Source: Paragordius varius
Lineage: Eukaryota > Animalia > Nematomorpha
Reading direction: 5' to 3'
DNA: 64,000 nucleotides
NCBI GenBank assembly: GCA_964247055.1
Contig: OZ176054.1
Coordinates: forward strand, 11,470,001 to 11,534,000
The position numbers were made by a program, and so were the translations under genes. This document shows positions 30,545 to 63,397 of this stretch, piece after piece. Under the pieces are notes generated by a model. It was not told where the DNA came from, searched no databases, and was given only the letters and a program-made list of their open reading frames with translations. The number at the start of each line of letters is the position of its first letter. Positions within the stretch are counted from its first letter, which is position 1.

Positions 30545-33500
30545 ATGGCTAGGTTCCTAAATTCTATGATTGTGCCGGCAAGTCAACATACTCTATTTAT
30601 GAGAGGGTTTTCTGGAACAATGGATAAAGAAGATATAAGGTCGTTTTTTTGTTTATTTTTAGGGATTTTTTTACGAAAGAAGGTGGAAAATGCTCATTTG
30701 ATTTTATTAAGCTCTCCGATGACAGACGATTTTTGTTTGTAGCGTTACGGTTTGAAAGTAAAGATGTTGCCAAAGAAATGTTAGCTAGGTAAATCTTATA
30801 AATTTTATTTTAGATATAATGAAACGGAAATTTTGGGTTGTCATGTATCGATAACTTGGTACAAAGATCTTAGAAAAGCGCGTCAAAAAGGTACAATATA
30901 TTTACTGCTGAATATGCCTCTTTTAAATTTGCACCTTACTTATGAGTTATCGTGAATGTGGTACATAAAACCATGATATATGATCTCAAATCTTAAAAAA
31001 TATGATGAAAATATGTATATGTGATTGATGTGAATTTACACGAACTATAATGTATGATACTGAAGTCATGTTAGTTTGTCTAACCAAAAAATTCGTTTGG
31101 AATCATAAAATCTTCTGAATCTTATGATGCACATATAATATTTGTGCGGCAAATTAATAAAATTTTAAATTATTTGATAACTCCTACATTGGTAATTAAT
31201 CTAATACTATAGAGTGTATTATCGACATTATTTTATAAAAAGTGAAATTTTTTGTCTATTTATTTAATTTTTAATGTATTTTTTATTAGCTTTTGATGCC
31301 ATGAAGGATAAACGTGAATCACGGTATGATAAAAGACAGTCACCGTCCCGAAAACGGTCCACATCATCCAAGTATTTAATATATCTATATACTGGAACAA
31401 TTTTTTTACAGCCGTTTTGAAACCAAAATTTTCGACAAAAACACAGTTCCATATACGATTGATAAAAAATAAAATAGATAGCTACAAGTTCCTTTTATTT
31501 TTATATTAAGGGCCCAAAAAAGTTTTGAATTAAACCAACCTCTTTATGTATTTTAAAAGTGCATCTAAAACGTTTTCTGTAATTTTTTCCTATAACCTAC
31601 TTTTTTAGTGATGATAAACAACGAAGCCCTTCATCCTTTGATGAGAGAAATAATGACGACTCTCAAGATAACGATGAGGGAATGGATAAAAAAAGAGCAG
31701 ACGAACCGGAAGAAGAGGAAGAAGGAAGCGAAGAAGGTGAAATCCGCAACAAAGAGGACGATGAACCCCGATCAGCTGTTGACGGTCGCCATGGCAACAA
31801 TACCGATGATGATGGTCGCTTTGGTAACAACGTAGATGATAAAAAACGACACAGAAAAGCGCCGTCTCGACGTTTTTATAACACACGCTCTTCTGCGGCT
31901 AAACGGGCAGCTGCTCGAAAAAGTAGCAGTCGATCAGCGAGTCCTCCTACATCTCCTGCTCCCCGAAGCAAAAAAGACACGACGGCCACTGTCAATGGAT
32001 ACACTAGTGGTAAGTAGAGTTAGATAATAAGTCTAATTTTTTTGTTTCCATTTTGTCAAGACTATCATTAAGCAAAACTTTTTAAAACATATCCAAGTTG
32101 TGTGGTAAAAAATTACAAATTACATTTTGATTTTTATGCACATAAAATAATACTTCTCTTTATAAAAACCTATTTAAACCTCTTTACAAATATTTTTTTA
32201 TTAGGTTTCGAGATGACATTTTAAGCATATTATAAAAGTGACATTAATTGAACAATTTCATTTTTGAAACATGGAATAATGCCCCCCTTTAGTACTTTTG
32301 TGATAAATGTTTAGGCATTTATATTTTATAGTTGTAAAATTACCTTATATTTAAGATCATAACAAAGATGAAACTGGGAGTTACGCATCCTCACATGGTC
32401 CTACTAGTCCAGAACGAAAACGGTCAATGTCACCCAATTATTCATCTACAAGACGAAGAAATGTTTATAATTATCGAGGTGGAAGTAGAGGTACTGTAAA
32501 AAATAATTTTTTAGTTTTTCTGTTTTTATTAAAAATTACACTTTTTACTATAATATAGGTCGTCGCGGAACTAATCGAGGCTTCAGAGGCGGTTATAACT
32601 ATTCGCAATACTCTAGACACGGAAGAAGGTAATGATAACTTTAAAATTGTCGACTGATTTTTGCATTTTAGACACTTTATTTTTTAAAAGATTGAATATA
32701 AGCATAAACAGCAAGATTTATTAAGATTATCACGAAAAAACCCAAATGAATAAAAATGATTACCACATGGTTAAAAAAATATGGAATCAATACACCATAT
32801 ACCACCTTTGATGAATCCTTACTGTGTGACCTACACATATTTTTTAACCATGTACTAATCATTTTCATTTGGATCATTTGTTTTTTAGTGATAATCATTT
32901 ATTAATTTTGTTGTAAATAATGCTTTACCTATGAATGTGCCACTTGTAGGCGTTTTTTTTATAAATAATAGCGAAATCTTTTATTAACATTTAATCTTAA
33001 AATAAGTTTTAAAGTTGTTTTTTTCTTATATGCAACCTAATCCCCGAATTATTTATACAAATGTAAAAGCTGGTGAGATAATTTATCCAAATTGGATTTA
33101 AAATAAACCACATTTTTGACCTGCAATAAAAAATCATTTTAATAAATTTTTTTGCATATATCATATTTTTATGCACAGAGGCGCCCCAAAAACACCATCG
33201 CTTAGCCCCCCACCCCTGGATGATGAGGCCGAAAATACCACATCAGCTCAAAATAAAGGAGTAGAAACAAATGACATGTCTGCGAGAACCGAATCAAAAT
33301 CTAAATCGAATTCGTTCAACACAAGTCATAACGCTAATATTTCTAATTCAAACACCAATGCCAATACCAACAATAATCGTGATATCGAATCACCCCTCGA
33401 TGAATATGAAGAAGATGAAGAGGATTTACAAAAACTCGGCTTGCTTAAAAACATTAATGCCGCGAATTATAAGGCAAACGCTAAAGAATCTGCCAATCAA

Positions 33501-36500
33501 GCTTCACTCCATCACGATGAACCACCTCCTCCCCCTCCTCACAAAGAAGATATTAATGGTCCAATGGAAAAAAGTACAACTAGTGGGATACGGTATCACA
33601 TAAAGGGCCTGGCGACGAACAATAAGAGCAGTAGCACAACGGTAAAACTTTAATATTTTTTAATCAATATAGACCAACAAAAGTGATAAATGTTTTTTTT
33701 AAAAAGAACCCTTATTTTTTTGAGATCGATTTATTTTGCCGTTCTTTCTGATATATAAAAAGTTTATTAAACTTTTTTAATGATTATTGTTATAAAAAGT
33801 AAAATATATATATTTTCCATGATATAACCATACCTTGATTTTTTGTTAATATAAACTATTTCTTATATCGGTTGCGATGAAATAAGGAATAGTTAAATTC
33901 GTACAACATACCACATATAGGAATTACAAAAAATGACAAAAATAGGAGTTGTTATAGGAAAAAAATATTTGTCATTTACTTTTTATTATAGTTTTGACTT
34001 TAAAATTGTAATTTTTACTGAACCAATCAAGATTAATCAGAATCACAAGTACCGTGCTGAAGGGGAGGGATGGAATATTTCCATTTCACCATCTAACAGA
34101 AAATCAGCATCTCCTGGATCTCACCACCCTGCTCATAATGAAGCCGGTGGTGCCGAAAATGATGGAGCGTCTGATGCAGAATGTAGTAAATCTTATAAAT
34201 ATATATATAATTTGGAATTTAAAGAAGAAATTTCGAAATACATTTTTTCTGTGTTGATGAATTGTGGTAATGGTATAAATAATGTCGATAATTAAAATAT
34301 TACAATTTTTTTGGAGAGGTTTTTAATTTTGGAAAAAATTACTGTTTAAGTCCCTTAATCAATATATAATATATTACAGAGGGAAAAAATGGTAAAATAG
34401 GTAAATTAAATAATTTAGGTCTATTGCAAATTTCATCCCAGAAACATCGTTGGCTGTTTTATATGTTTAGAATAAAAATGTTTAATGGCTAAATTAATTA
34501 AGAGCGAATTTGAACTGCATAAGGATTAATTTAAAGTTAGCAAGTGGCTATGTAATATGAAGCGTTTAAAGTTTAATTGCAAGTGTAGAGAATTAATAAG
34601 TTTCAAATAAATTATAAATGATCAAGGTTGAACTTGGTGCTTAAGGGTTTATTAATCAAAGATATATGTTCAAGTTAGTTTTAAAAAGGTCAAGGGTTGA
34701 TTTTTTAGCGGACATGCATTCTTCTCTTACCGCTTCGAGCGTGTTGAATTGTTTAAGGGTAAATATTGAAATTTTATGGTTAAAGTTATACGAAAAAATT
34801 TGAAGTGCATAAGAAAAGAGTTTTTTTATTTATAAATGCTGTATATTTTTAAAACCTCAATCAGTTTTTATCATATATAAATCGCTTATTGTAAACCCTT
34901 TGATTTTTTTATCCTAGATCGAGATGAATCACGATATAAACATGGAGGATCAGGGAGCCATAAACAACGCAATCATTCTCCGGTATGTTTTTTTTATTCC
35001 CTTTTTAAAACAATAATATATATATATATATAATAACCTATTGTTTTGGCCTACGAAATGAGTAAGGGCCATGCATTTTGATAGATTATACATTTAATAA
35101 TGATAAATGTTTTATAAATAGTAAAAGTATGGCTGTTTTTATGTAATTTATAATTTTTTTAATTTGAAGTCCCGTGGAAGTTATCCTCATTATAAGGGCA
35201 ATCGGGATCGATATGCAAGTATGAATGGTACGGCTGGACATCATAATAAATATCGCTCATATAATCAAAGGTAATATATTTTTTATAAGTTCTTCACTTA
35301 TTATTGTTAACAAAAGATTACTTTATTTTAAAATAAGGCACACCGGAATTAAAAGATTTTTTGCAGAGCCGTTTGAGAATACATTTTTTTCAACTTAAAA
35401 CCGTTAATTTCAAATGTGTTTATCTAGGTTTAAAATTATACAATTTCACTATAATGTCATAACTAGGTTTTTTTAAATTTTATAATAAAAGGTTTTTAGT
35501 TTAGTTTTTAGAAAGGACGCTTACAATATATTTTAGTGTATTATGTTTTTGCGGCCATATATTAATATTCTTTTATAATGGGGATGTAAATTTAAAATAA
35601 CTGAAATATAAGGAGTATTTGACTACAAACAATGGAGAATAAAAACTAAAAACTTTTTTTTCCAAAAAATACTATAATTATATTTTTTGCTAATTCATAA
35701 TATATATTTATATCCTTAATATAGAAAAAGTGGAGAATACAGACAAAATAATACCTCCTCAAATAAATATGGTGTTGAAGACGAAGGCGGTAGAAAAAGT
35801 ACAATGAGTGGCGTTCCTCATAAATTTGCTAATCGGGGAGGAGCTGGAAAAGGGAGACGTAATATTATATTTTGCTTTTTTGGATATTTTTTATCATTAT
35901 GCGTGAATTTTTAAAATGGTTCTTCTAGTTTTAAATTATTATCGTGTTTTTTATAAAGTTGTAGCATATCTTTACACACACACTCACCGATGCGTGGCAC
36001 AATGAACAAAAAAAATTATATTGATTAATAATGATTATTGGAAAAAACATAATATTAATTGAAATTAAATTAAAAGATTTATTATTTCTTAAATAATTTG
36101 TAAATGTTAAGCCGTATATTTTTTCAATAGAGGGGGTCATTATTGGCCAAGGTGTCAACTGTTTTCATATTTATCTTTTTTTCAGAAATAATTTTTTTAC
36201 TCAATATTCATTAATTTTTTGGGGGGACGTAAATATGTTAGGTTATCCTACCAAAGAATATTCAGATAGATCAAGGTCCGGTTCAGAAACTCGTTTATAT
36301 CATCACCAAAGTAAACGCCATCACGCATCCTCTGATAAAATGGGTAATATGGCTGGTGAAACCTATTCTAGAAGCCAAAGTCGTACACCCTCTTCGCCTC
36401 GGTTTTTACATTTATTTATATTTTTTTAGAAGATAAAATTGATATAAAGACAAAAAATTGTTTAAAGAAATTTTTTAAGTTTAAGTTGGAATATAATTGC

Positions 36501-39500
36501 ATTTTTTAATTAATACTCAAATGTATAAATTTAATTATTATAAAATTTTTAAACTCAACAAGGTATGATCTCCTTTAAAATCCCTATAATCTTTATATTC
36601 ACATGACACTTTTAATATTTTTTGTTTTTATCAAACATTTAATTAATTATAAATTAGTGGGCCTCCTGATCCAGAAAGTCTTAAACTTGGATCCATTTTC
36701 AAAAAGCAAAAAACTTTGGAGGAATTGGCAAAACATAAACAACTCCAATCTCAACAACTGATGATGATGGATGCTGCTGCTAAACAAAGTAAATAAATTT
36801 ATATTTTAAAAGATTTTTTTGTTTAAAAATTCTACATTGATGCAATTATTTGAAAATAACTGGATTTTTTGAAAATAGTTTGATTCATAAACATATATAA
36901 AACTTGTTATTATAAAATTCTTAAGTATTGTGGTCTTACAAGCATTAATAATTTGAACTAAATTTTAATCAATTTATCTTATTATTTGAAATTGGATTTA
37001 TGTAGGTTAAACTATTTAATATTCCGTCTTTGAACAATTACGGTGAGATAGGGTTAATCAAAAATATCAAATTTATAATTTGTTTATAATAGACTATTTT
37101 GCCGTCAGAGTAATCGTATTTATTTTTTTTATCACTAGGTGGTGATCATCAATTTGCCAATAATCCCGAATCTGAAAGTTTTCTTAAATCAGCCATGGAT
37201 ACAGCAAACACCGCTTCTGTCAAACGTTTCCAAATGTTAACTAATCCCTCTTTAGCAAGTATATATATTATAGTTATGAATGAGTTACATAAAACAGCGT
37301 TTTTTTAGATGTGTTTTAAAAGAGTACTACTAAAATTTTAGCGTAAAACAGTTAAGTTGAACGTTTTTTTATAAGACATATATTGCTTATGATACCACAT
37401 CATTGACCGACTCTTTTTTTGAGAAATTAAATTTAAATTTTTTAACCGTCATATTTAAAAAATGATTGGAAATACGGTAGCCGAAAACGTGTACATATTT
37501 TGTCCGATATAACTACAAAACTGCCAACAAAGTCTTATAGCCACCTCCCCGCGGTGTCGGATGGGGCATGTAAATGCGCTAACGGCAAAGGCGGTTTCTA
37601 ATGATATGTAAAATCATTATTTGTACACAAGGGCATGTGTACTACGTAAAAAAATCGCCTCAGATAACCACGAAGTATAAATATTATGAATATGAATTAC
37701 TTCATGGTAAGAATTCCGAATTCGGAGTCCTACCCTTTATGAGATAACTACGAAACTGTGACTTTTTTTAGAAAAAAATTATAATATCATGAGACAGTTT
37801 TAGCGCCCTTTATTTATTAAGCTCATTCATTATAAGAGCGCTTTTCTGTATTTTAAAAGTGGTGTTTTCATTTTATTATGTTTTAATTCTAAAGAAGAAA
37901 GCAATTATTACGGCAATGATACCGCAATAAATATTAACAAGAGTATGGAATCGAATAATAAGTCTGGACAAAGCGGTGCTTCTCAATCCTCGCAACAATC
38001 CAAAATAAATATTAACTTTAAAAATTTCCAAAGCAATTACTCCGCACCCGATGATATAAATATGAATACGATGGAAACTCAAAACTTTAATAATTTTAAT
38101 GCTTCTTCCAATATCCAATTATCGGCTCATGATGCTGAAATGTTGGTAGCTTCAACAACCACAAATTATAAAAATCAAAGCAATATTAATGCACCCACTG
38201 CTTTGTTGGATGATTTTGATGGTTTCATTTTTTTATTTTTTGGTTGGCCTTTTTAAACATTAAATATTTGGTAAAATTATGAAGATAAAACATTATAAAA
38301 AGTAAAAGATAAATAGTCCTTTTTTAAGGGAAATAATTATATGTTTATAAACCTTGTTAATACCGCCTATCGTTTTGGGGGGAATGGAGATATAAGTAAA
38401 ATAAAAAATATGGGTGTTTTTTTAAAAAATATTAGTTTTTTATTTTTCGATGCATAATTGTTCTTAGTTATAAACTTTCGACATATTAACATTAAACATA
38501 AAAAATTTTTTTTTCATTATTATTATATGTTCTATATTCAATATTAATATTATTTAGGAGATGATGATTGGCGGACCATGGCAGGAAAATTTTCAGGGAA
38601 TATGAACAAATCAGGAGGAACCACTGTAAGTACGGCCGATAAGCTTAACCAAGAATTGGAAGCTAGGTATTTTTTATAATCTATTCCCCAATATTTGCCT
38701 AGACTTAAATTTAAGGATTCAAATTCACAGCCATCTTAAACACACCTGTTTGTATCAAATTGACGCATTAGGAAATCTTATTATTAATGCAGTTCATGAC
38801 CGCATTATATCCAATCATTTAAAAAGCTTAAGTACAATGTATTTAAAAATAGGACTTAATCCGTTAGCCTATTGAATTTATACATATTTAATGGATTATG
38901 TAATTGACTGGTAAAATTTTATAATCGGCCGAACCAATTTTTATTATTTAATCGGTTTATAATCCTTATTTAAACAATATACATAGGCTTAAAGAAGTCT
39001 CTGGAAATGACACAAATGTTGCCAATCAAAATAAACGCAAACGCGTAGAATCTGCTGAGTTTGATTCGAATGATTTGATGGATAATCAAAATACTAACCT
39101 ATCCTCTAAAAATATCTCATCGGGTTCAGGAGGGGCTTATAAATTCAAAACACAAGCTGTGGTCGATACATTTAAACATTATTTAGAACAAGTTATTATT
39201 ATTGCGTTATAAAATTTGTAAAACCTTTACTCATACTCAATATACGTAATTTTATATGGTTTAGGCTTACAGAGAGGATTGCAATACATTGTATGGAGTT
39301 TCCAAGGTTCTCATGTAAGTATTTGGCCATTTTAACATCAGTTTTTGCTTAATCATTAATTAATTAATATCATTTAAAATTAATTATTTTGTGAACGGTT
39401 TTAAAAATTATAGATGTGATGATAATTTGCGCGCCTCCATACTCAAAAGCGCTGACGATAATGTTAAACAATTGGCTTCTAAAGCGTTGAATGATCTTGC

Positions 39501-39543
39501 CGACATTTTTAAACGTGTCAAAACTCAGACAATGGAGACTTGA
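30545..39543 (+). CDS. 1043-aa protein: N-terminal RRM, long RS/RG/acidic low-complexity region, C-terminal Periphilin-like helical domain (20 exons)
   Basis: Phase-consistent GT-AG model totalling 3132 nt: 30545-30639, 30663-30788, 30814-30890, 31290-31371, 31609-32009, 32356-32490, 32559-32628, 33179-33641, 34032-34182, 34918-34982, 35170-35270, 35725-35858, 36242-36401, 36658-36788, 37139-37258, 37895-38221, 38558-38666, 38987-39191, 39265-39314, 39414-39543. RRM HTLFMRGF..FVALRFES. C-terminus LEQAYREDCNTLYGVSKVLI resembles PPHLN1 IEQVYRQDCETFGMVVKMLI. Confidence 0.8.
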
Positions 39544-42566: not shown

Positions 42567-42605
<39 letters not shown>

Positions 42606-43943: not shown

Positions 43944-46900
43944 TCATTTTGAAACAAAATTGCTAAAATCAGTTTTAAGCGTAATAGTGGGCACGTTATT
44001 ATGTGTAGAATTAGTATTAGAAGCTACACCATTCGTTAAATGGTGAGTAGTTGAGGATGAATATAAAATAAATTTTTCGAAAGACACCTTTATATGTTCA
44101 TTGTTTTGTAAAATGTGCTTAAATATTTCATTGTATTGAGTCGCAAACAATGTTAAAATTTCGATTATTGCTTTTCGTATAGATTCAGTTTTGATTTGCC
44201 GATTATTATTATCAGCATCGTCATCATCAATTTTTGCAATAATTTTAAAGCAAAATGACGAGAGAAGGCATAAAAAGGTGGTAGATTGCGCTGGACTACA
44301 TCTCTTAAGACAGGAGATAAAATAAACAAAATAATCCTTTATTAGATGAATGTAGATATCATTAATTGCTTTCAATGGATGATTTACAATTGCGTCCATT
44401 TCTTTCAAGCATGAAGGTAGGATGGTTTGAATAAAGTAGAGAAAAATTTCTTTGGGCACAAAATCGATCTCGTTGAGTTTCGTTAAAAAGGATAAAATAA
44501 CGTTGAGAGTTTGTAGATGTGTTTTATTAGGAAACTCTTCAGTAGTGGCATTAGTTAAAGAGGAATTAATTAACTTAATATATTTATCAAATATGCCAAT
44601 TAATTCACGGGTAAAAAATGTACTACATTCACCCAAAGATTGAGATTCATGAAACATTTCACAAAGTGAAAACGTAAGGTGAAAAAATGGAATAATTGTT
44701 TGTAAGGGAGAAGAATCTGGGCTCTCATTTCCACCCTGATAAATTGTATTATATAAGGCTGCAACGATTACAATATATTTTTCTTGGTGGGAAAGATCGA
44801 TTTGAGTTTTATGAGTTGAAGCCGGGAAATTTAGATAGATACACTTAGCTATGGAAGATATACACATATTAGCTAGTGAATTAATTGATGAACGTATCGT
44901 TGTATATCGGTATAATTGATACAATTCATTCAGCGATATTATAAATATGGGCGATACATCATTTTCAACCTTAAAATTATTCAATAATATAAGTGTATCC
45001 ACTGCTTTTATAATTAATCGATACACATCGTGTTGGGACAATTTAGTTAGTTTTTGCTTGAAAATACGCTGTAATATGATTGAGATACCGATAATGACGT
45101 TTTTAAAGTCTGATGTTTCAATATCATAATCGCTCTTTTTGGTTATAGAAGTTATGAATGATTGAAGTATTACCAATACTTGAAAAATAACTTCATTTTT
45201 GTCTTCAAAAGCAAGAGTAAGTTTGTACGATATTTGAAGAATTTCCGACAAAATTTTGGGGTGATTAATAATTATAGGTGTCATAAAGTCCATGTTTAAA
45301 AGTAAATTGTTCAAAGAATCAAAGCATGCAAATAATTCACTTTTACGTAATTCAAGTGCATTATTGCACAGGGCATGTATCACAGTCCCCAAAACCAAAA
45401 AGGCTTCATCAAAGTTTACAGGCTGATGGATAAAGTACATGCTTAAAGCTCTACAAATTGATGCCCACATAGTACTATATTGTTCGTGTAGTCCTCCCCC
45501 TCCTCCTCCTAACGACTTTGTTAAAAGGGTTTCTGTCCCATTGTTGGGAGAAACAATTTTTTCAATAGAATGATGTTTAAGAAAATCGATCCAATTTGCG
45601 TATAAATATTTCAAATCTGATGTTTTGATTTCATAATCATTAATTGGATTTGTTTGTCGCGCGCTGGAAAAGTATATAAGAGAGTAGGCATGCAATATGG
45701 ATATTTTTTCCAATTTAGAAAACTTTACGTCCTCAGAATTTCTTAACGAATCAAAAAGTACTCTAAGGTTATTAGCAATGGTTTGGGGTATTGGATATGC
45801 ATTTGTTATACATTGACTGACCCATCGTCCACAAACATAACAAGCCATTGCTGTAATTAAGGCATTTTTCTTAGCAAACACATCGGTACTTTTATCGTTA
45901 CCATCGAATGTTGGCTTATCATCTAAAGGTATTGAAGATTTAAGAGATAAAGCGAAGGCTGGCTTTAAGCAAGCTCCTATTTGTGCCTCATATTGCTCAA
46001 GAATACAGTGATTTGACGAAAATTTGTCCCCTCGATCCTTTTGAATGTTGAATGCATTTTTATCAATGGTATCAACTGATTCATAAACGTTTTCAAAGCT
46101 TTCTAAAATAAGGGATAAAATTTTTAGACCCAGAACAGAAAGGGTAACACAAGTTTCAATATTGGTGACACATAGGAATGATATTCGCAATAATTCGTTT
46201 AAATGTTGGACAAGAAAATTTTGTGTAGTGCCAGATTTATGATTGACTGTATAATGTGGACCCTCATATTTATAATGATTATTGATGGTGGATATAATGA
46301 GAACGAGACATCGGGCACTTAATAACTTGGTGTCGATTGAAAATGGAACATTATTATTTAGCAATGTTGGACCCAATGTTATTTCCGAAAATTTGGAGTC
46401 TATATCATCATCAACTGTAGGGGACATAGATTCACCCATTTGTTGATTTTTGGAAAGGGGATCTAATTGTTTAGAGCCTAGAATGGTTTCAAAGGATGTT
46501 ATATAATCATTTAAATGGTTGTCAATCATGGTAATAGTTGTAACCATTTCATATATAATAAATTTAGATTCCGTTTTAACTATCATGTCCTCCTCTTGAT
46601 TTATATTGTACAAGAGATATTTTATAAAATTATTGTTATTTTCTTCGATATCACTGGATGCGTTTCTAAACCAAACTGATATTTTCGAATAATCCTTAAA
46701 GATTATTTGTTTAAGCAAGATGAGAATTTTGCGTCGTAACAAAGAGTATGAACTGTTATAATTATGTTTGCAACTAGAGAGTATATCATCTAATTGGAGC
46801 GGACTTGACTTAACATATATAAACAGATAATACATACATTCAAACGCTTCAAGTCGTATAAAATCATGATTATTATTGTTTAAAACATGACACAAAGTAC

Positions 46901-49900
46901 ATAAAAGCGATTTAAGGTAGCTAGTGTGAGTCAAGTTGTTATTTAATTCGGGTCCAACACACCCAGTTATGGCACTTATACAGCAGGCATAAGCCCAAGT
47001 TTCATAGGTAGGATCTGATGTGCTATTCAAAATACTTTGAGAGAAATTGAGCAACATAGGCTGTATTAAGTCTTTAATATCATCATAAACGCAGGACTCA
47101 ACAATAATTGCCAAACTTGTTAAGGACCAATATCGAATGTGCATGGAAACGGGATCAGACGATAAGGTAAGCAATAAGTTAATAGTAGTCTTAACCTCCA
47201 AATTTGATGCTTTGCCATTAGCTATGATACAAGCAAGTTCAATGATAAAAGCCGATCTTTGTGTTGGCTGAGTTGATTCTTTACAACCGTCAAAGGCAGT
47301 ATTAAATATATCTTTAGCATTTCTTTGCATTTTAACAATTTGGCCAATAAGCCTGGCCGACGAATAACGTAAAAATGGAGAAACCGAAGAAAATAATGAA
47401 TCCTTAGCAAATTTTACCAAAAGTTTATATTCCTCTTCTGATGCCAGATACTTGCTTGCTCTGCAACCGTACAAAGAATAGATAAGATTTAACCTCGATA
47501 TAAAATAAGGGTCATATCCAAAAACATCTTTTACATTTTTGAGTAAATGATTACACTTATTTTCTTCAATCTGTTCCCCAATCTTGATTAATGTTAGGTC
47601 AAAATGTTTTAATATTTGTAGCTTATGTTTATCTATGATATAAGGATAAATGTGTTGGAAACATTCGATTGCAGCTGACAACAGTCTTTGAGATATTGAA
47701 TGTGAAGTGCTATATACCCAAGGTTCCAATAAAATTTTTTCAAACTCGTTATCTTCCTTAACATGGGTCAACCAATGATTGGCCAAAAGATTTAAGGGAG
47801 ATGTTTTCTCATTTGTAAAATCTAAAGATGTTTGACCCAAATCATCATTTATTTTTTGATCATTTTCATTGGCATAAATAGGGCCTTTTAGATGCGTTTG
47901 GTCATACGAGTAAGTCACTAAGGGGAGACAACTATCATGTATAACGGTATTACAGTTGTTATTAGGAATACTAATTAAGGTAATTGGCAATAAGGCACTA
48001 ATTTCTCTTATATAAATATAATCTGTATCAATTGACTCAACCCCATTACATTTGGCTATGTTTGGAGATATGAGTAATTTTATAAGTGAATCAGGAGATT
48101 GGGTTATTTCAATAATGAGTTCACGAATCAGTATATTATATTGGTTATCCAGTGTTGAAGGGCGTAAACAAGTTAAGATTTTGAAAAACAATGTTTTTGC
48201 CTTAACAATCATGCATTTGTGTTGGAAATTATTAGACATTAGAATTTCACCGATGTTAGCAAAGGATTTTAAGACAAAACCTAACAATTCTTTAAAATCT
48301 TTTTCATTATCTACAAAACATTGCTTATCATATTTTAAACAGACATAGTGTAGATGAGACAATGCACCATTGAAATTTATTATAACTAACGGTTCTAGGG
48401 GTCCTTGCTTTTTTTCAATGGTAAGCGCCATATTCCAATATTTACGCATATCTTTAATTAAATCTTTGAAGTAAGTAAGATGCACCAAGCAATTAGCGAT
48501 TTTCCAGGATACTTCACTGTAATTTTCTGTTTCGATGCTTTTGGTAGCAAACGATACGTTTAATGCAATGAAAAGATTGAAAACCTTGTCATATGTCAAA
48601 TACACTTGATTTGGATAAAGTTCAACCGTGCTTTTATACAATGAACAAAGATGTACCATCGCCCTTGCATATGCGTGAACATACGTGGTAAGCGTCCCTG
48701 TTGTTGCATGATTGGACAAATTTTGTGATTTTAAAACTGACCAAAAGTACTTGAGATAATCGATTAACAGAATTGAACCCGGACCTAGGGCTTGAAAGAG
48801 TTGACATTGGCAATCAAAAGCAGACTTTCGAATGGCTGAAAATGGCATTCTCTGACCCCTTATCCATATATGATTTTCTATCGTTTGATTCATGGTGGTA
48901 ATAGTGTTAAGGATAGCTGGTCCGATTCTCTCTATAAGTAATGTTAAAGTTTGAAACATCAAAACTATGGTATCTATGATGCCTAAAAAATTTTCACAGC
49001 TGCAGATATCTTTGTTGATCCCGACCAGCTTTTTGGTTAACATAGAATGCACAATGTTAAAACAAACGTTTAAATCACATAAATCTTGGATTAAATGTTT
49101 GCAAACATTACGCATGATAGTTAAACCTATTTGTTGATGAAAAGCATAAAGCGTAGGAACGACGGCTCTTGTTTTAATATACGATGAGTTATTGTCTAAA
49201 AGACAAAAATGTTGAATTACGAAATCGAAAAGGTGATAAAAGTAGGTTACATAATAACTCACTCCTTCTGCATCTTCCAAAAAGTTTTTCACATTTTTAT
49301 GATTGGTAGAAGCAGTTGGCAAAATCAAATGAGGTTTTTTGCTCAATAGCAGCTTCATAAACTCCAAAAGTGCATATGATACACCTATTAGGGTTGTTTT
49401 ATAAACCGTAAAGGTGGACTGAATATAATTCAGAGGGTTATTATATTTTGAGTTGGCAGCGTCGCCACCAACCTTAAAAAGTGGCACCAATGTAAAATTC
49501 GTCAAATTTTCCACTTTAGAATTGATATTAGTGAGTTTTGTCAAACAGGGCTTAAATATGGTCAAAAATCCGGATGAAATAGTTTGAGGTTTCCATTTCA
49601 CGGAATTTTCTTGAATCATATCCTTGTCTGGAAATACCGTTTTAAACACTAAAAATGCAATTAATTTGGAGGTAGCTTTACGAACAAAGTAATCGGCATA
49701 ATCAAACAACTTATAACAATGATTCAATATTAGATCAAAATCATTCATTATAGTGCATCCAACCTTGGGGACATTTAGAGACAATAATATTATCTGCGCA
49801 GAAAGTATTTGTAAGGATGGGTAAAACCCTTTTTCTTTGTCCGTGTTGTTAAAAATATTATTCTTAAAAACTATAAATTTATAAACATCCAAGTATAATT

Positions 49901-50525
49901 GTGGTTTTATATCTGAAGAATTGAGGAATAGAGTTTCAAACACTTGAAGTATTGCATGTAAAAACGCTTCTTTTTCGGAGCCATCTTTTTCCAATAACTT
50001 TTTATTGATAGGACTTTGGCTTAATAAGGAAGATATATTTTTAGATAGCTTGATACATGTGCCCATCAGTTCTTCTAAATTGGTCGTTGATATTTTTACA
50101 GTAGTAATTAACTTAGATAAAACATTAAGGGTGAATAATTTAGCCATAAAAGGATTGTATAAATCATTTAGCGATTTTAATTCTTGTTGCGCATTGAATG
50201 GATATTCATTGGTAGCTTTAAGTAGAATCATAGATTTATTAAAAAAATCCAAAACCAAAAATGAATCTTCACATATCCTAAATAGATTGGCTAAACGATT
50301 GGTTATTGCCATATTAATTATCTTTCCGTTAAAAACGCCAGTAAATATAATTTGACATATCTGTCCATATAATTTGGTTTGATTCAGTTTTATATCAGAT
50401 TTATCCATGGTATATATAATTTTATCGAAAAATTTCGTCCATTCATAAATATATATTGGTTTTCGATCAACATTCAATCCAATAAGAATGGATTCATTAA
50501 GAAATAGGCTTTGACAATATTCCAT
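43944..50525 (-). CDS. HEATR5B: HEAT repeat-containing protein 5 (HEATR5A/B, Laa1-like), 2193 aa, single exon
   Basis: Uninterrupted 6582-nt ORF. N-terminus MEYCQSLFLNE..RKPIYIYEWTKFFDK matches HEATR5B MELAHSLLLNE..KRPVFIFEWLRFLDK. Internal matches include ILEQYEAQIGACLKPAF and AITGCVGPEL. Confidence 0.93.
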   Translation of the reverse strand: MEYCQSLFLNESILIGLNVDRKPIYIYEWTKFFDKIIYTMDKSDIKLNQTKLYGQICQIIFTGVFNGKIINMAITNRLANLFRICEDSFLVLDFFNKSMILLKATNEYPFNAQQELKSLNDLYNPFMAKLFTLNVLSKLITTVKISTTNLEELMGTCIKLSKNISSLLSQSPINKKLLEKDGSEKEAFLHAILQVFETLFLNSSDIKPQLYLDVYKFIVFKNNIFNNTDKEKGFYPSLQILSAQIILLSLNVPKVGCTIMNDFDLILNHCYKLFDYADYFVRKATSKLIAFLVFKTVFPDKDMIQENSVKWKPQTISSGFLTIFKPCLTKLTNINSKVENLTNFTLVPLFKVGGDAANSKYNNPLNYIQSTFTVYKTTLIGVSYALLEFMKLLLSKKPHLILPTASTNHKNVKNFLEDAEGVSYYVTYFYHLFDFVIQHFCLLDNNSSYIKTRAVVPTLYAFHQQIGLTIMRNVCKHLIQDLCDLNVCFNIVHSMLTKKLVGINKDICSCENFLGIIDTIVLMFQTLTLLIERIGPAILNTITTMNQTIENHIWIRGQRMPFSAIRKSAFDCQCQLFQALGPGSILLIDYLKYFWSVLKSQNLSNHATTGTLTTYVHAYARAMVHLCSLYKSTVELYPNQVYLTYDKVFNLFIALNVSFATKSIETENYSEVSWKIANCLVHLTYFKDLIKDMRKYWNMALTIEKKQGPLEPLVIINFNGALSHLHYVCLKYDKQCFVDNEKDFKELLGFVLKSFANIGEILMSNNFQHKCMIVKAKTLFFKILTCLRPSTLDNQYNILIRELIIEITQSPDSLIKLLISPNIAKCNGVESIDTDYIYIREISALLPITLISIPNNNCNTVIHDSCLPLVTYSYDQTHLKGPIYANENDQKINDDLGQTSLDFTNEKTSPLNLLANHWLTHVKEDNEFEKILLEPWVYSTSHSISQRLLSAAIECFQHIYPYIIDKHKLQILKHFDLTLIKIGEQIEENKCNHLLKNVKDVFGYDPYFISRLNLIYSLYGCRASKYLASEEEYKLLVKFAKDSLFSSVSPFLRYSSARLIGQIVKMQRNAKDIFNTAFDGCKESTQPTQRSAFIIELACIIANGKASNLEVKTTINLLLTLSSDPVSMHIRYWSLTSLAIIVESCVYDDIKDLIQPMLLNFSQSILNSTSDPTYETWAYACCISAITGCVGPELNNNLTHTSYLKSLLCTLCHVLNNNNHDFIRLEAFECMYYLFIYVKSSPLQLDDILSSCKHNYNSSYSLLRRKILILLKQIIFKDYSKISVWFRNASSDIEENNNNFIKYLLYNINQEEDMIVKTESKFIIYEMVTTITMIDNHLNDYITSFETILGSKQLDPLSKNQQMGESMSPTVDDDIDSKFSEITLGPTLLNNNVPFSIDTKLLSARCLVLIISTINNHYKYEGPHYTVNHKSGTTQNFLVQHLNELLRISFLCVTNIETCVTLSVLGLKILSLILESFENVYESVDTIDKNAFNIQKDRGDKFSSNHCILEQYEAQIGACLKPAFALSLKSSIPLDDKPTFDGNDKSTDVFAKKNALITAMACYVCGRWVSQCITNAYPIPQTIANNLRVLFDSLRNSEDVKFSKLEKISILHAYSLIYFSSARQTNPINDYEIKTSDLKYLYANWIDFLKHHSIEKIVSPNNGTETLLTKSLGGGGGGLHEQYSTMWASICRALSMYFIHQPVNFDEAFLVLGTVIHALCNNALELRKSELFACFDSLNNLLLNMDFMTPIIINHPKILSEILQISYKLTLAFEDKNEVIFQVLVILQSFITSITKKSDYDIETSDFKNVIIGISIILQRIFKQKLTKLSQHDVYRLIIKAVDTLILLNNFKVENDVSPIFIISLNELYQLYRYTTIRSSINSLANMCISSIAKCIYLNFPASTHKTQIDLSHQEKYIVIVAALYNTIYQGGNESPDSSPLQTIIPFFHLTFSLCEMFHESQSLGECSTFFTRELIGIFDKYIKLINSSLTNATTEEFPNKTHLQTLNVILSFLTKLNEIDFVPKEIFLYFIQTILPSCLKEMDAIVNHPLKAINDIYIHLIKDYFVYFISCLKRCSPAQSTTFLCLLSSFCFKIIAKIDDDDADNNNRQIKTESIRKAIIEILTLFATQYNEIFKHILQNNEHIKVSFEKFILYSSSTTHHLTNGVASNTNSTHNNVPTITLKTDFSNFVSK

Positions 50526-50593
50526 TTTTATCGAGGTTTAAAAAGCTATCTCTAAGCACGCTGATGAAAACAAGCAAGAGTTAAGAACTGCTG
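50526..50593. promoter_or_regulatory. 68-bp divergent (putative bidirectional) intergenic region between HEATR5 and TXN2
   Basis: Lies between the HEATR5 ATG (50525, minus) and the TXN2 ATG (50594, plus). No TSS data available. Confidence 0.6.
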
Positions 50594-51022
50594 ATGTTAA
50601 AAAATATTATAGCGTTTGGACCTACGATAACAAAACGATTTTTTGTTAAAAATGTTCAATCCGTTGAAAACTTCCGTGAAATCATAAAAGATAAAACTCC
50701 TGTAGTTGTGGATTTCTATGCCGAGTATAAATTATGCTTGTTAATAGAAAGTTGGTGTGGCCCTTGTAAAATTCTTGGACCTAGATTGGAGCAGGAGATA
50801 GGAAAACATAAAGAAAAGGTTATAATGGCCAAGGTTAATATTGATGAGTTATCTGATTTAGCCGATGAACATAATGTAGGGAATACTTTTATATTTTAGA
50901 TTGTAAATGTACCAACAGTAATTGCTTATAAAAATGGCAAAAAAATTGATACCTTTTCTGGATCCCAAGATGAAAGCTTTATTAAATCATTCGTGGAAAA
51001 GCTAATTAATGGGCCACATTGA
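50594..51022 (+). CDS. TXN2: Mitochondrial-type thioredoxin (3 exons)
   Basis: Exons 50594-50724, 50752-50875 and 50900-51022 give a basic presequence, VVVDFYADWCGPCKIL and NVPTVIAYKNGKKIDTFSG. Introns are 27 and 24 nt. Confidence 0.9.
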
Positions 51023-51780
51023 TTAGATAATTTTTGACTTTTTTATATTCTGTAAATATTTTATGCCCTAATTCAATCAACAATTTTTTATATCAAATTT
51101 TAAAATATATGCTAGTTATTATTTAAATTTTGACAAAGTTTTATTTGTATACGGTTGCTTTGGGGCATTTAAACATGCATCGCAGATTTCAAATTTAATG
51201 AATTATGCGAAATTTGGAAAATAACAGTTAAAATTAACCATCGTTTTTATCATTCCACATTGTTGCAATCGTTGTAGTTAGAAATAAACTTTTCTAAAAA
51301 AATTATTATGCCATCTTATAATAGACTTAGCAATATCCTATTCTTTCTATTGACCGACGTTGTCAATTTTCTTGCTTTATTTTAGCCCCAATTACGCGAT
51401 ATTCTTACGACGTTTGCTTACTAAGATCTTTGCTTAATAGAATATTACTATAAATAATTCGAAAACTTTTAAGATAAGTCCAAACATTCTGCCTTTGGTG
51501 TTCAGTAAAAATAAATTTTAAATTTTTACTTTAACTGATGCATTATCCCTGATTTTTTGTTTAAGATAGAAGGTTTTTAACTCTCGAATGACTTAAAATT
51601 TAAATATCTATTTTTATATTTCTTATCGTAAATGTTATAAATAGACATATACATATTATACAACTATAAACACAATGACAATTAAAATTAGGATTTATGT
51701 ATCATTAAAATTTGGTTTAAAATAATATCCACATAATTAGTTAGTTTATAATATCCATTATATAATTTTGCCTTTTTTCT

Positions 51781-56850: not shown

Positions 56851-56896
<46 letters not shown>

Positions 56897-59800
56897 ATTT
56901 ACAATTCAAATTCACTCTCGAACAAGTCTAATTCATCCTAAAAATAAACTATCTGTATTGCTAATATAACTCATTATTAATAGAAAATATATCTTTATGG
57001 CATAGTTTATTATTTTTTACGTATTTTTTAATTTTATAAAAAAAGTTTATTTTTTAAAAATATAAAAATGTACAGGTAAATTTTAATTAATAAACACATA
57101 ATTTATTTTAGGGTGAATTTGAATTGTTCGAGGGTGAATTTGAATTGTTTAAGGGCGCGTTTGAGGTGTAAATGATATATATGTATATAACAATTTTGGC
57201 TAAAAAATTAGAAGTGATTAATAATATTACTTTAACAGTTTCATAGTTTATAAGTGAGTCTACGGCCCGATTGCCAGCTTCATTATCTGCTTTATTCATT
57301 TGAATGCGATATTTCGTTCTAAAGAGCGAAAGAAAATGTAAAAGTTTTTCAAGCAAACGCAACATTTTTTCATCCAAGGGTAACATTTTTTCATCCAAAG
57401 CAAGAAAACGATTTTTTCATAAAATTTAAAATAAATATTTTTATTTTATTACAATTGTATTTATTTAATTTAAAGTTAATATAATAAAATTTTAGCGTTA
57501 AATTATAATTTTTAAGGGTTTATCATCAATATTTGATGGCAAATTCATTGATAAAATGTTGCGTTGGTTGAAAAAATTTTGCTTTTGCATGGAAAATGGT
57601 ATATCAACCATTACATTTATGTTTGGGGTTTATGGAAACAAAACGAACCGAACATCGAAATAAATTTCTTTTATTCAATTATTTATTAATACAAAAATGT
57701 GTTAATATCATTTGGAAATTACCTTTTTTGCTATTATATTTAAAATGTAAAAATACCATCTCAAATTAGCCAAAAAGTGGTCATATTTTTTTATTAGTTT
57801 ATTGTTATCAAAATAATTAGATGATATCTGTATATTAAAGAAAAAGCATTATTACGCAAATTTATAGGAGAAACCGAAAGCATATGTGAATATTCATACA
57901 TTAAAAATTTAATTATATAGAACCAAAAATTTAAAACGTAAAAAACAAAATTTAGATCAAAAAGACAACCATATTTTCTAAAATAATTTAATATTTCCTA
58001 CATTTTATAATTTTAAAGTATCGTATTGAGAATATGATGGTTAAATTACGCATTTATTTCTAGCTGCAAAGCAAAATGATCGGTTATAATTTACATAATA
58101 CAAGTTTAAATTATTTAGTAGCAGTTGATATACCGGTTTTTTCGTATATTTTCTGTTTATATTGCATATAGATGTGATTTTTTTCTCGCTTTTTTAGGTA
58201 ATAAACAATATCTATGAATGCTAATGATAATATTTAATTATAAAAAATACTAATACTTTCATAAACGCGATAATTTATATATAAAAATTTAATATTTGAT
58301 TCAAATTCCTTAACTCTTTTTTATGTGTATATATCTATAATCTTATTATTAATAAAATCGTATTTATCGCTTATATTTAAATTGTTAATTATGAAAAAAA
58401 ACAAATTTTAAATCATACAATAATTCTATAAACAATAAATTTAAAAATAAACTTTTAATCCAAAAAAAAGTAAATAAAAAAACCTCCAAGATGTAATCCC
58501 TAGGGTCCATGCCGTATAAGCCGTCATACAGGCAAGCGTTATAGCGGCATATTCAACACCACATTTATACCACTATAAATAGTATTTTTTAGATGAAAAA
58601 AAAGATTAATTACAGTAAAAATAATTAACCCTCGATCTTTGTGATAAATAATTTATATAATATTTCGTTTTATTATTATTTTTATATTTTATTGCATTTA
58701 ATCCATGTATAGTATACTCTTATATTTGTATGAAAACGATTTAATAAATTATACATTTATATCATGTTAGTATTGAAAAGTTAAAAAATTTTGGCTATAT
58801 AGATTCAAATGGTCCATTTTAAGTTTAATCCGTACATATTTTTCCTATAAAATCATATATAAATATAACATAAGAAAAATTACTAAAATTCCAGTAACGA
58901 TAGACACTTCAAGTATGGTAGGGACCAAATTAAACACCAAAGCACTCAGGACAAAATTTATACCTCTAGCGATATAAAAATATAAGGAATTTGACAGAAT
59001 TAATTTCTAAAAATATATAATTCACAATAAACACTTTAAAAAAAAGAAAATCATATTTTTGTTCCATGCTTAAAAGCTACATAAAAAAGTTTTGACTGTA
59101 AAATTGATTATAATATGCAATTAAACAAAGTAATACCGTGTCCCTCTATCAATAGCCTTTGAAAGGGCCCCCGTTTGCCGAGACAAATGGAAATCAAGGT
59201 CCAAGGAATGTAAATGGAGAAAAACACTTTTTGCCACACGGCGAATAGAGTTTTGGGCAACTTTAGCAAAAACGGCCGTTCTTAACTCCGTGAAAAGGGA
59301 GGCACCTGTACGGGCCAATCCATCTATAATATATATGGGTGCAGTGTGAATTGATATATACCATTTACAGTTCGAATTCACCCTAAAACGATTCAAGTTC
59401 ACCCTTGAACAATTCAAATTCACCCTAAAATAAATTATGTGTTTTTTAAGATTAAAAATTACCTATATTTTTTTTTTATATTTTTTTAAAAAAGAAACTT
59501 TGTATATAATCAAAATAATACTGAAAAAAAAATAAACTTTGCCATAAAAATATATTTAATTATAATGATGAGTTATATTAGACCGACTTTTCATTATTTA
59601 TTTTTAGGGTGAATTTGAATTGGTCGAGGGTGAATTTGAATTGTTCAAGGGTGAATTTGAATTATTTAAAGGTGAATTTGAATTGTAAATGGTATATATT
59701 TGAAAGATAAAAAGTAAGTAGAAAGTAAAAAAAAATATTTTAATGAGCATATACTTATAGCACGATATTTATGAAAACGTTGATGTTAAATATATTGCAC

Positions 59801-61311
59801 GACTATTGTTTTGGGCTGCAAAATTATGATTATGATATATAAATTGGTAACACAATCTATTATGTCTTTTAGTTTAATATTTTAATTTTTATTATATTTA
59901 GTTTTTCCTAGTTAGTGATAGTTAGTTTCAATAATTATACGTATTTTTTTGTCTCCTTGTTAAAAATTATAGATATGATTTATGTTTTACGGGACCCAAA
60001 AAAACTAAAATTTACGTATAGACCTTGGACTGAGAATAACAATGAAATTTGTCCAATTTTAGGGTTTGTGATAAAAAACTGAGTGTTTCAAAAATAAATT
60101 AACTTTAATTAATATTTCTCGCATTTATTAGCATAAATTTGTTCCTATAAACAGGTTTAAGGCTTTAAAGCTATTGTTGACTTCCCTATAGAAGAATCCT
60201 TTGGTAAGAAAGGTCAAAATTGGTCAATACTATAATCCTATACACTGTGTGCCAAATTAAAATTAATAAATAGCGTTTCTATCTAAGCAATTTATAGAGA
60301 AACTTCCCAGCTTATATTCGAAAAAAATTGGATGTTATGTTGCATAAAAAGAAAATGACCAATATACTGATTTTAACGAGTGAATTTTTTAAAGAATTTA
60401 CTTTGCATATTAATAGCTACTACAAAGCTCCAATATATATCAATTATCAGCATTTAAGAAGTGAAGCATTTACAATTCAAAAATTAGAATCAATTTTTAA
60501 AAAACCTAACTAATCTTATTTTAATATACGATGTTAATTAATTAATATGTTTTTACATCCAATGATAATGTATAGTCCGTATTTCATAACTGAATCTATC
60601 CCGAGTAAATTGGGTGGGACATTGAGTATCCCATTGTGAACTTCATTAAGATAATCGATAGCATATTTAAATATGAATGGAACTTGAACGTTTAAAATCT
60701 AATATACAGTAAAAATTGCAATTTTACGGACAAAACGTGAAAACTAAAGACAAATATTTCAAAAATAACATTAATATTTAAACATTGTTATTTCTTACAT
60801 AAAGTATACGATTACAAATGTAAATTATATAATGAGTATAATACCAATTAACACATCTAATTTTGATTTTACAATACAAAACGTTATTTTATATAGGTGA
60901 AAAAATATAGTTGTAAAAATATTTTGATTCTTTTTCTCCGCATTTTAATTAGAAATAATAATAAATGTTAAAACTTTAGAGGCTAAAAGAAGAGATAGGG
61001 CGGCAACTACACGAGTTTTGGTCGCTAAAGAATCTTTTGGCCAAACGAAAGCCATCATACTTTTCACAATTTCCCATCCGGATATTTGGGGATTATGAGA
61101 TAAAGTTGGAGTTAATATATTGTTACTGTTTTTTAAGGATTTAGCATTTTCATCAGGATTAGAATTAGTTTGTGCATTGTTAAATTGCGATGAAGAAATA
61201 TATTTAACCTAAATATAAATTTTTAAGAGTAACCTGACGAAAGTTAGTATATACCAACCGATTACGTATAATAATCGATCTTGCAAACTGCAAAGATTTG
61301 ATTGTATTCAT
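51781..61311 (-). CDS. ABCB7: Mitochondrial ABC transporter ABCB7/Atm1 (15 exons)
   Basis: Exons 61311-61234, 61208-60975, 60698-60557, 59323-59137, 58965-58884, 58572-58484, 57318-57231, 56843-56669, 56080-55923, 55257-55037, 54868-54739, 54302-54131, 53681-53578, 52589-52363, 51922-51781. Motifs [40 protein letters not shown], Walker [28 protein letters not shown] and IAHRL. Confidence 0.96.
55590..55746. repeat. Perfect 62-bp inverted repeat with a 33-nt loop in ABCB7 intron 9
   Basis: 55590-55651 is the exact reverse complement of 55685-55746. Confidence 0.93.
56895..57175. mobile_element. MITE with TIRs built of 21-bp subrepeats, in ABCB7 intron 7
   Basis: Ends ATTTACAATTCAAATTCAC and GTGTAAATGA with TA flanks. 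Subrepeat GGGTGAATTTGAATTGTTC. Inverted homolog of 59361-59692. Confidence 0.75.
59361..59692. mobile_element. 332-bp MITE (TA-flanked, Tc1/mariner-like) with 21-bp subrepeat TIRs, in ABCB7 intron 3
   Basis: TATATA|CCATTTACA ... TGTAAATGG|TATATA. Three to four copies of (A/G)GGTGAATTTGAATT(G)TT at each end in opposite orientation. Confidence 0.8.
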
Positions 61312-61406
61312 GGTTAGTATTTTGCAATCCTTTGATTTTACAATGCTGCATGTGAAAAATATTTTGAGAGTTTTTCATACATGCATCGGATCAGTGAAGA
61401 GTGCAC
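61312..61406. promoter_or_regulatory. 95-bp divergent (putative bidirectional) intergenic region between ABCB7 and SEC13
   Basis: Lies between the inferred ABCB7 ATG (61311, minus; presequence-like [18 protein letters not shown]) and the inferred SEC13 ATG (61407, plus). Confidence 0.55.
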
Positions 61407-63397
61407 ATGGTATCATTTGATAAATTTTAAAATTAATTTTTGTCCCAATTTATATCTTTTGTTTTCATTCATAGCTTACCTTAACAAACACAATTGATAC
61501 GACTCATGACGATATTATAGTAAATTAGTTTTTTTGACTAAATTTTAGCATGATGCTCAAGGAAATTTATATGGAACGCTTTTAGCCACTTGTTCTTCAG
61601 ATTCTACCATTAAAATCTATGAATTATCTGGCGAGGCCCAAAAATATAAGGCTACTCTCACAGGGTAAATATTAATTTGCTAAAAAATACAAAATTTTTT
61701 ATCTAATAATAAACCATTTTGTCCCTTTGATTATTTTAAATATAACCTATTCATTGACTTATAATTCATTTTTATTTCTATATTTTTATCTTTTCTATGT
61801 GTAATTATCTTTCTTTATTGCAGACATAATGGACCAGTTTGGCAAGTCACATGGGCACATCCAATATTTGGTAATATTTTAGCTTCCTGTTCCTACGATA
61901 AAAGAGTCATAATTTGGCAAAATGTGGATGAGAATTGGATTGCTATGCATGAACACACTTATCATGGTTCATCTGGTAAACATATAATTGTTAAAATTTG
62001 ATTAAGCGCATACATTTAGGGTTAGATTTGACAGGTTGCATCTAAAAATATTTGAAAAAATTTGTATTACCTAATATAAAAATGGTTTCAAAAATATCAA
62101 AACATAAAAATAATCGGGAAATTGAGTAAACGCTATTTAAGCCAATATTAGTGGTTAATTTTTTTTATATAATTTTAACATATATTTGTGTTTTTATTTG
62201 TCTAACCCATATCCGATAAGGGAATTCACGTTTTTTTACCGATAAAAAACCAAAATACATTAAGTTATATGCTTCTTGATTTAATATTTGCACAAAATTT
62301 TGGATGCTATATGTAATTTTTTTAATTAACTTTGAACAAGGACTGGGAGTCGGCCTGCTTTGTGTAATTTTTATTAGTTTTCGGAATAATACAGTTTTTA
62401 TCGGAATCGCGGTTATTTTAATAATATCCTTTTTATATATTTAGTACAATAATAACCTTATTTTAGTTTTCTACTTTATTTGAGTCATAAGTTATTTAGA
62501 TTTTTATAATTAGCCAAAATTAACCATCATTTCAAAAAAATCAAGGGGATCGAAACCAAATTTTGTCTATATAATCTTTGCAACTTTAACAAGACAAAAA
62601 ATCCATTTTGGAATTCTTTTTTACACAAAAAAATATCTTACTATTATAAAATTTTAATCATTTTTTTCATTTTTAGTTAATTCCATCAGTTGGGCCCCTT
62701 ACACTGCCGGTTTAAAATTGGCTTGTGCCAGTTCTGATGGCTCTATATCAATCATAAGTTGTCAACCAAACAAAATCACTGTTGATGATGGCGATAATGA
62801 GAATATTAATCCCACAAAAGATAGCAAGTGGACTCAACAAATCATTGAAAATGCTCATGAAGTATAAATGAATTAAAGAAATTAAAATCTAAAATATGTT
62901 TTAATCAAATACTTGATTTTTAGCGTAGTTATATTTTTTTAAAAAACGGTTATACGCTTAAAATGTTAATTTTTTGATAAAATTACGAAGTAGAAAACAA
63001 TGTTTAAAGTAATCTCGCCCTCTTTTCGTTGCTTACAATTGTATTATATGATTATGGAAATATGTTAACCTATAAATATATCACGATTAAAAAATTTGAT
63101 TGTATTAATAAAAATACACATTTTTATTATTAATTAACCTTTTTCAATAAATATAACTTAAAATTTTTTTTTTGGAGCTTTCCTATGATTATTCACTGTC
63201 CAAATTAATTATACAATTTAAACATTAATATTTTATGTTAAGTTAGGCGTAAATGCTGTGTGTTGGTCACCCTTAATATTTTCCGATAAATTATTTAAAC
63301 CGACGTTGGGGAATTCAGACGCCACCCAAACTGATGTTGAAATACCAACCCTTCTTTTAGTTAGTGGAGGATGTGATAATTACGTTAAAATTTGGAG
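61407..63397 (+). CDS. SEC13: SEC13 WD40 protein, 3' partial (continues beyond the window)
   Basis: Exons 61407-61409 (ATG only), 61475-61519, 61549-61664, 61824-61975, 62677-62861 and 63243-63397. Motifs HDAQ..YGTLLATCSSD, GHNGPVWQVTWAHP.FGNILASCSYDKRVIIW and VSGGCDNYVKIW. Confidence 0.95.

Follow-up and report, generated by a model that had tools for sequence, protein, structure and literature searches.

Introns of less than 30 nucleotides (nt) have long been believed to be absent from animals. A survey of 51 animal genomes found introns below 30 bp only in myxobolid myxozoans and in Dicyema japonicum, in which the median intron measures 22-27 bp and tiny introns are the norm (Hadjez et al. 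2026, PMC13644364); Nematomorpha are not mentioned in the main text of that survey. Microintrons have also been described in flatworms (Opisthorchis felineus, Clonorchis, Schistosoma, Echinococcus and Macrostomum), with length peaks at 37 and 90 bp, and they were missed by gene finders run at the default minimum intron length (Ershov et al. 2019, PMC6530080). For ciliates, intron lengths of ~25 nt in Paramecium (PMC5014332) and of 15-16 nt in Stentor (cited in PMC13644364) are quoted. Here we examine six segments of 23-29 nt with GT-AG ends in four genes of the hairworm Paragordius varius, an ecdysozoan with AT-rich DNA, all within one 64,000-nt stretch of its genome (the window; GenBank assembly GCA_964247055.1, contig OZ176054.1, positions 11,470,001-11,534,000), and compare them with introns elsewhere in the same genome.

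The evidence as a whole makes it likely that all six segments are true spliceosomal introns of the U2 type with GT-AG ends, that they are ancient introns which have shrunk, and that the shortest size class to which they belong is concentrated in early coding sequence and clustered by gene, with intron length rising along the gene. The original prediction, which had listed the six segments and placed each of them less than 300 nt after an ATG, held on both counts: they lie at the coordinates given below, are 23, 25, 27, 24, 25 and 29 nt long, and begin 48-255 nt after the start codon (95 and 221 nt in a gene with RNA recognition motif (RRM) features, 131 and 255 nt in a thioredoxin gene, 79 nt in an ABCB7/ATM1-like transporter gene and 48 nt in SEC13). 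The features of these genes, in window coordinates, are as follows.

30545-30639, 30663-30788 and 30814-30890, plus strand: coding exons one to three of the RRM-like gene, which starts with the codon at 30545; once spliced, they form an open frame.
30640-30662, plus strand: 23-nt GT-AG intron of the RRM-like gene, phase 2; reading through it shifts the frame and meets a stop ~34 codons on.
30789-30813, plus strand: 25-nt GT-AG intron of the RRM-like gene, phase 2; placed by frame logic only.
50594-50724, 50752-50875 and 50900-51019, plus strand: exons of the coding region of a mitochondrial (TXN2-like) thioredoxin; the best database matches are mitochondrial thioredoxins.
50725-50751, plus strand: 27-nt GT-AG intron of the thioredoxin gene, phase 2, directly before the WCGPC active site; placed by five of five templates.
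50876-50899, plus strand: 24-nt GT-AG intron of the thioredoxin gene, phase 0, containing an in-frame TAG; placed by five of five templates.
60948-61208, minus strand: exon 2 of the ABCB7/ATM1-like gene; residues 41-81 match the Atm1/ABCB7 structures 7pr1, 4mrn, 7n58 and 7vgf.
61209-61233, minus strand: 25-nt GT-AG intron of the ABCB7/ATM1-like gene; its removal joins exon 1 to the ATM1-homologous frame.
61234-61312, minus strand: exon 1 of the ABCB7/ATM1-like gene, start codon 61312-61310; 26 codons of a presequence-like peptide.
61397-61399, plus strand: ATG of SEC13, followed by a probable, inferred 74-nt intron (61400-61473) and the exon 61474-61519.
61520-61548, plus strand: 29-nt GT-AG intron of SEC13, phase 0; placed by every template that reaches the N-terminus.
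61549-63398, plus strand: further SEC13 exons, separated by introns at 61665-61823 (159 nt), 61976-62676 (701 nt) and 62862-63242 (381 nt), from spliced alignments.

The GT..AG pattern by itself is uninformative, since the window contains 2,759 such segments of 21-33 nt, and the evidence is therefore carried by reading frames and homology. Exons were searched singly, and exon joins were judged by aligning database proteins to the genomic DNA with a home-made protein-to-genome spliced aligner, which admits GT-AG introns only and has a minimum intron length of 18 nt. The intron penalty was set to 12; at 20, in-frame tiny introns turned into insertions, and at 10, long introns were split around false micro-exons. 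Candidates that were in frame and free of stop codons were flagged as ambiguous. It had been claimed that removing each segment restores the frame, and this stood for five of the six, which shift the frame or bring in an in-frame stop; it did not for the 27-nt thioredoxin segment, which is in frame and stop-free, so that the status of this segment depends on homology. Three of the six (both in thioredoxin and the one in SEC13) share position and phase with introns of orthologues.

The thioredoxin gene gives the most complete case. The spliced product aligned to templates from a snail, amphibians and mammals at 53-56% identity, with no gaps across either junction. A start at the ATG at 50652 was rejected as it is out of frame, and the start codon is that at 50594. 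Thioredoxins of the snail Biomphalaria and the bat Myotis were aligned to their own genes to place the introns of these species. The 27-nt intron, after residue 95 in phase 2, coincides in position and phase with a 3,932-nt intron in Biomphalaria and a 2,130-nt intron in Myotis, and the 24-nt intron, after residue 136 in phase 0, with introns of 419 nt and 8,428 nt respectively.

In SEC13, the 29-nt intron lies after residue 16 in phase 0, where the choanoflagellate Salpingoeca rosetta has an intron of 184 nt. The two genes share introns at three sites (residue 16, phase 0; residue 54, phase 2; residue 106, phase 1), which measure 29, 159 and 701 nt in the hairworm and 184, 169 and 173 nt in the choanoflagellate. 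The relevant introns have been lost from the SEC13 gene of Gnathostoma, and two further SEC13 representatives (P0131 and P0126) were dropped from the comparison as they come from intron-less transcript contigs. The frame of the exon 61474-61519 is closed upstream, and a start in which the ATG is directly followed by GT gives an N-terminus equal in length to that of Gnathostoma SEC13. The 701-nt intron is single-copy, and one polymorphism (61538 C>G) falls inside the 29-nt intron. An intron of 48-63 nt offered by the aligner at 62761-62828 was rejected in favour of a lineage-specific in-frame insertion of ~20 residues around ...PNKITVDDGDNENINPTKDSK... Since snail, bat or choanoflagellate introns of ordinary size occupy the same codon and phase, these three segments are ancient introns that have shrunk to 24-29 nt. 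At least three of the six thus appear to be old introns that predate the bilaterians or the animals and have since been reduced to near the smallest workable size.

For the ABCB7/ATM1-like gene the argument comes from the frame and from variation between individuals. No methionine precedes the conserved helix in exon 2. The start of translation must therefore lie in exon 1, which is in frame only once the 25 nt at 61209-61233 are removed; the intron site itself falls within the unconserved presequence. The ABCB7 and SEC13 segments (61173-61647) are present in DNA contigs of four sequencing runs (X1, X3, X4 and X5), which come from two individuals or more, and are therefore genomic and not assembly errors. 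In a second individual, the ABCB7 segment carries four substitutions and two 1-nt insertions, which lengthen it by 2 nt, to 27 nt, and leave GT and AG in place, and its divergence between individuals is ~24% against 2-5% in the flanking exons. As both length and substitutions vary while the ends stay intact, the segment behaves like a non-coding intron and not like coding sequence. A search with the ABC_membrane family was too insensitive for the gene to be rebuilt or for deep positions to be tested. The long introns of this gene also contain a high-copy repeat at 60670-60803, where contig word depth rises ~20-fold (~14,000 against ~700 in run X1), and 21-nt tandem repeat arrays of the unit AGGGTGAATTTGAATTGTTCA, in both orientations, at 57106-57164, 59367-59430 and 59606-59686.

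In the RRM-like gene, the spliced frame (30545-30890) crosses motifs that, judged by eye, resemble RNP-2 and RNP-1. The GC fraction is 0.22 in the 23-nt intron against 0.30 in its flanks, and 0.12 in the 25-nt intron against 0.33. Inside the 23-nt intron there is just one A, which lies 7 nt before the 3' end of the intron. Both introns of this gene would be placed by frame logic together with these motifs.

Ancestral positions and phases, the pattern of polymorphism and a canonical splicing machinery (see below) thus give good support to the claim that these are real ultra-short spliceosomal introns, and the six segments are very probably introns, known here from DNA alone.

The size class was followed beyond the window in a sample of about 45 other genes. 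Exons were matched one by one with Pfam across the whole genome, and the matches were then aligned at the level of sequence. The short introns of this sample comprised 44 of 21-33 nt, one of 36 nt, one of 39 nt and 19 of 53-97 nt, with peaks at ~23-25 and ~55-85 nt; none of the 66 short introns sampled measured 40-52 nt. The genome therefore holds three intron size classes, of 21-33 nt, of ~53-97 nt and of hundreds to thousands of nt, and the tiny introns form a class of their own, as had been proposed. The gap had been set at 30-64 nt; this holds within the window, but genome-wide there are introns of 30-33, 36, 39 and 53-62 nt and the actual gap lies at ~40-52 nt. Of the 34 further introns that the original prediction reconstructed in the window, those of SEC13 were rebuilt here (74, 159, 701 and 381 nt).

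Tiny introns are strongly enriched near the starts of genes. Of the 55 introns that lie within the first ~250 coding nt, 28 were tiny, against 6 of the 92 that lie further in (odds ratio 15, p = 1e-9). The small GTPases provided 24 genes with 86 introns, 30 of them of 21-33 nt. In these genes, the tiny share fell with coding position from 12/22 (0-100 nt) through 8/17 (100-200), 5/19 (200-300) and 4/17 (300-400) to 1/11 (400-520), and the median intron rose from 31.5 nt in the first 100 nt to 411-555 nt in the bins beyond 200 nt. Intron length correlated with coding position (Spearman rho 0.42, p = 6.5e-5), and the gradient can be seen within single genes, with successive introns of 23, 24, 28, 67 and 1392 nt in one and of 30, 27, 31, 693 and 306 nt in another. 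The CCT chaperonins behave in the same way: the first introns in seven genes measured 25 and 26; 23 and 23; 24 and 71; 27, 28 and ~36; 61; 84 and 57; and 55 and 61 nt, and later resolved junctions were nearly all at least 232 nt, with two exceptions of ~67-73 nt. Among deep junctions in CCT, HSP70 and myosin genes, only 1 of 64 was 36 nt or shorter. First introns are usually the longer ones in eukaryotes, and the gradient here runs in the opposite direction.

The tiny introns had been described as confined to the 5' ends of genes, and in this form the claim was not borne out; the pattern is one of strong enrichment along a gradient, with tiny introns also lying deep in Rab-type and myosin genes. 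The clearest exception is a myosin gene (locus L054, G000:C5:4359951-4360618, minus strand), in which a frameshifting 32-nt intron and a probable in-frame intron of 36 nt lie in the middle of the motor domain, ~1 kb into the coding sequence and after introns of ~600 and ~880 nt. In two Rab-type genes, introns of 31 nt and 23 nt follow others that exceed 1 kb.

The splice signals of the tiny introns are minimal. The 5' signal is G/GT, with A at +3 in 69% and T in 28%, and later 5' positions are merely A/T-rich; the same holds for long introns. Towards the 3' end the introns become rich in T (79% T at -3 and at -5) and close with AG, with A's ~6-14 nt upstream and no fixed branch motif; the GT-AG ends of tiny introns elsewhere in the genome are to be read with the fact that the aligner admits no others. 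The genome contains at least 35 copies of the U2 small nuclear RNA (snRNA) above the Rfam threshold, the best of them with the canonical GUAGUA branch-site box, as well as a U2AF65-like gene. Many of the U2 snRNA copies stand in clusters, several of them near contig ends (G000:C3:257000-527000, C2:11950000-11988000 and C5:12727000-12788000). Splicing would most likely proceed by intron definition, with an ordinary U2-type spliceosome acting on minimal signals (G/GTA, a T-rich tail with AG, and an upstream A). In Paramecium there is selection against retained introns that can be translated. There seems to be no sign of such selection here, as lengths divisible by three were not depleted among tiny introns (~15/45) and in-frame stops were not above chance, in a sample too small for certainty.

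Several explanations of the 5' bias, and of the segments themselves, need to be weighed. Among the rival readings, the least unlikely holds that the bias is an effect of genes: some genes, perhaps broadly or highly expressed, would have only tiny introns and others only long ones, and the bias would arise from mixing short genes of the first kind with long ordinary genes. Tiny introns do cluster by gene (p = 5e-5); four GTPase genes have tiny introns only, reaching coding nt 354-435, and about eight have no intron under 100 nt. However, the order of introns within genes is not random either, as shuffling lengths within GTPase genes gave p = 0.006 and the tiny intron lay upstream of the long one in 16 of 19 pairs, and the long CCT genes have introns of 23-27 nt first and introns of at least 232 nt afterwards. 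As the sole cause of the bias we therefore regard the gene effect as unlikely; effects of gene and of position seem both to be real.

A second explanation, to which we give slightly less credence still, is mechanical. Introns of ~25 nt might be spliceable only near the cap or promoter, where, for instance, the cap-binding complex or the initiating polymerase could assist, and would for this reason be restricted to 5' ends. The cap-binding complex favours splicing of the cap-proximal intron, and both the strong 5' enrichment and the finding that the first two introns are the short ones in long CCT genes fit such a need. The original prediction had also raised this possibility, and it is weakened by the myosin introns and by the tiny introns that follow long ones. 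The 32-nt and 36-nt introns of the myosin gene and the 31-nt and 23-nt introns of the two Rab-type genes would have to be spliced far from the cap, as would those that reach coding nt 354-435 in genes with tiny introns only, and in SEC13 it is the cap-proximal intron that measures 74 nt and the second that measures 29 nt. Since tiny introns also occur far from gene starts, an evolutionary origin of the enrichment is favoured over a mechanical need: it is more likely to be an outcome of position-dependent shrinkage, or of protection from expansion, possibly linked to expression. On protection from expansion, which the original prediction gave as its alternative, one long ABCB7 intron of the window contains a high-copy repeat, but the 701-nt intron of SEC13 is single-copy.

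It is highly improbable that the segments are never removed and are instead insertions in frame, errors of the assembly or damage in decaying genes. The evidence does come from genomic DNA and the 27-nt thioredoxin segment could be tolerated in frame, but the other five contain a stop codon or shift the frame, and the genes affected (among them SEC13, thioredoxin, ATM1, CCT subunits and Rab1) are core genes. A GT-AG class of this size recurs in dozens of conserved genes, positions match introns of distant species, and the sequence is borne out by independent DNA runs.

Some points weigh against reading the segments as shrunken introns of a 5'-enriched class. Five sequencing runs matched the window at 60000-64000, none of which is on record as RNA, and the four that were examined are DNA contigs; searches of protein databases with the thioredoxin, SEC13 and Di-Ras sequences returned no protein of this species. 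If retained, the 27-nt thioredoxin segment would add nine residues and would not break the protein. The introns of the RRM-like gene have no support from homology, as its single exons are too short and gave no matches in Pfam, PDB or Atlas. Beyond the window, the sample consists of a few conserved families, the home-made aligner can take in-frame insertions for short introns (as at 62761-62828 in SEC13), and coding position was used as a proxy for distance from the transcription start.

The neighbourhood of these genes adds some further observations. A HEATR5B-like gene at 43944-50525 (minus strand; 2,193 codons, 22-23% identical to fish HEATR5) is intron-less and forms one uninterrupted open reading frame (ORF), and 5' micro-introns are therefore not present in every gene. 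Start codons stand head to head, 68 nt apart between the HEATR5-like and thioredoxin genes (50526-50593) and 84 nt apart between the ABCB7/ATM1-like gene and SEC13 (61313-61396); these spacers imply bidirectional promoters and extremely short or overlapping 5' leaders. Two paralogous intron-less ORFs of 151 codons (21214-21669, plus strand) and 133 codons (28127-28528, plus strand) share the pattern ...QETIDW...TFMIL.QS.YTF.RRY.QL.NLRKN... Elsewhere in this genome, a Di-Ras-like gene is likewise intron-less, and matches a protein of the hairworm Gordionus at 64% identity and 297 bits; other animals reach at most 271 bits, except for the best match (P0294, 315 bits), which is labelled as the ostracod Cyprideis torosa but may be a contaminant of that assembly, or derive from a parasite.

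Should these introns be real, one spliceosome would handle a hundred-fold range of intron lengths within single transcripts, and it would become possible to test, within genes, how short an intron animals can splice and why intron size depends on position. Were RNA to bear this out, a spliceosome adapted to a single length would be ruled out, and studies of minimal intron recognition would gain built-in controls. In practice, gene finders with an intron minimum of ~30-40 nt will break many gene 5' ends in this genome, which could inflate reports of gene loss in the group.

The two hairworm genome texts that we compared make no mention of introns; the systems compared here are those described above. 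Like those of myxobolids and Dicyema (PMC13644364), the hairworm introns are 20-30-nt introns in an animal, lie at conserved positions, have signals close to GTa...AG with a loose upstream A, and occur alongside a retained U2 snRNA and U2AF. Unlike in these lineages, tiny introns make up only about a third of the sample (30 of 86 introns in the GTPases) and the median is not below 30 bp; moreover, the tiny introns share genes with introns of 0.3-3 kb along a 5'-to-3' gradient. Ciliates are similar in intron length and in having a conventional spliceosome, but their introns form essentially a single class and are not known to follow a positional gradient. The flatworm microintrons (PMC6530080) show the closest organisation, with two short classes beside kilobase introns, a 5' preference, adjacency or clustering, and no special motif. 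They differ in that the peaks here are at ~23-25 and ~55-85 nt, with the lower class below 30 nt, and in that the hairworm does not belong to the Platyhelminthes. Only the flatworm descriptions match the gradient, which points to a convergent force that acts on intron size according to position. On balance, we lean towards regarding the hairworm as a third independent animal lineage in which introns of 21-33 nt are routinely spliced, and as the first in which they occur with kilobase introns in the same genes, along a 5'-to-3' gradient and in two discrete short classes.

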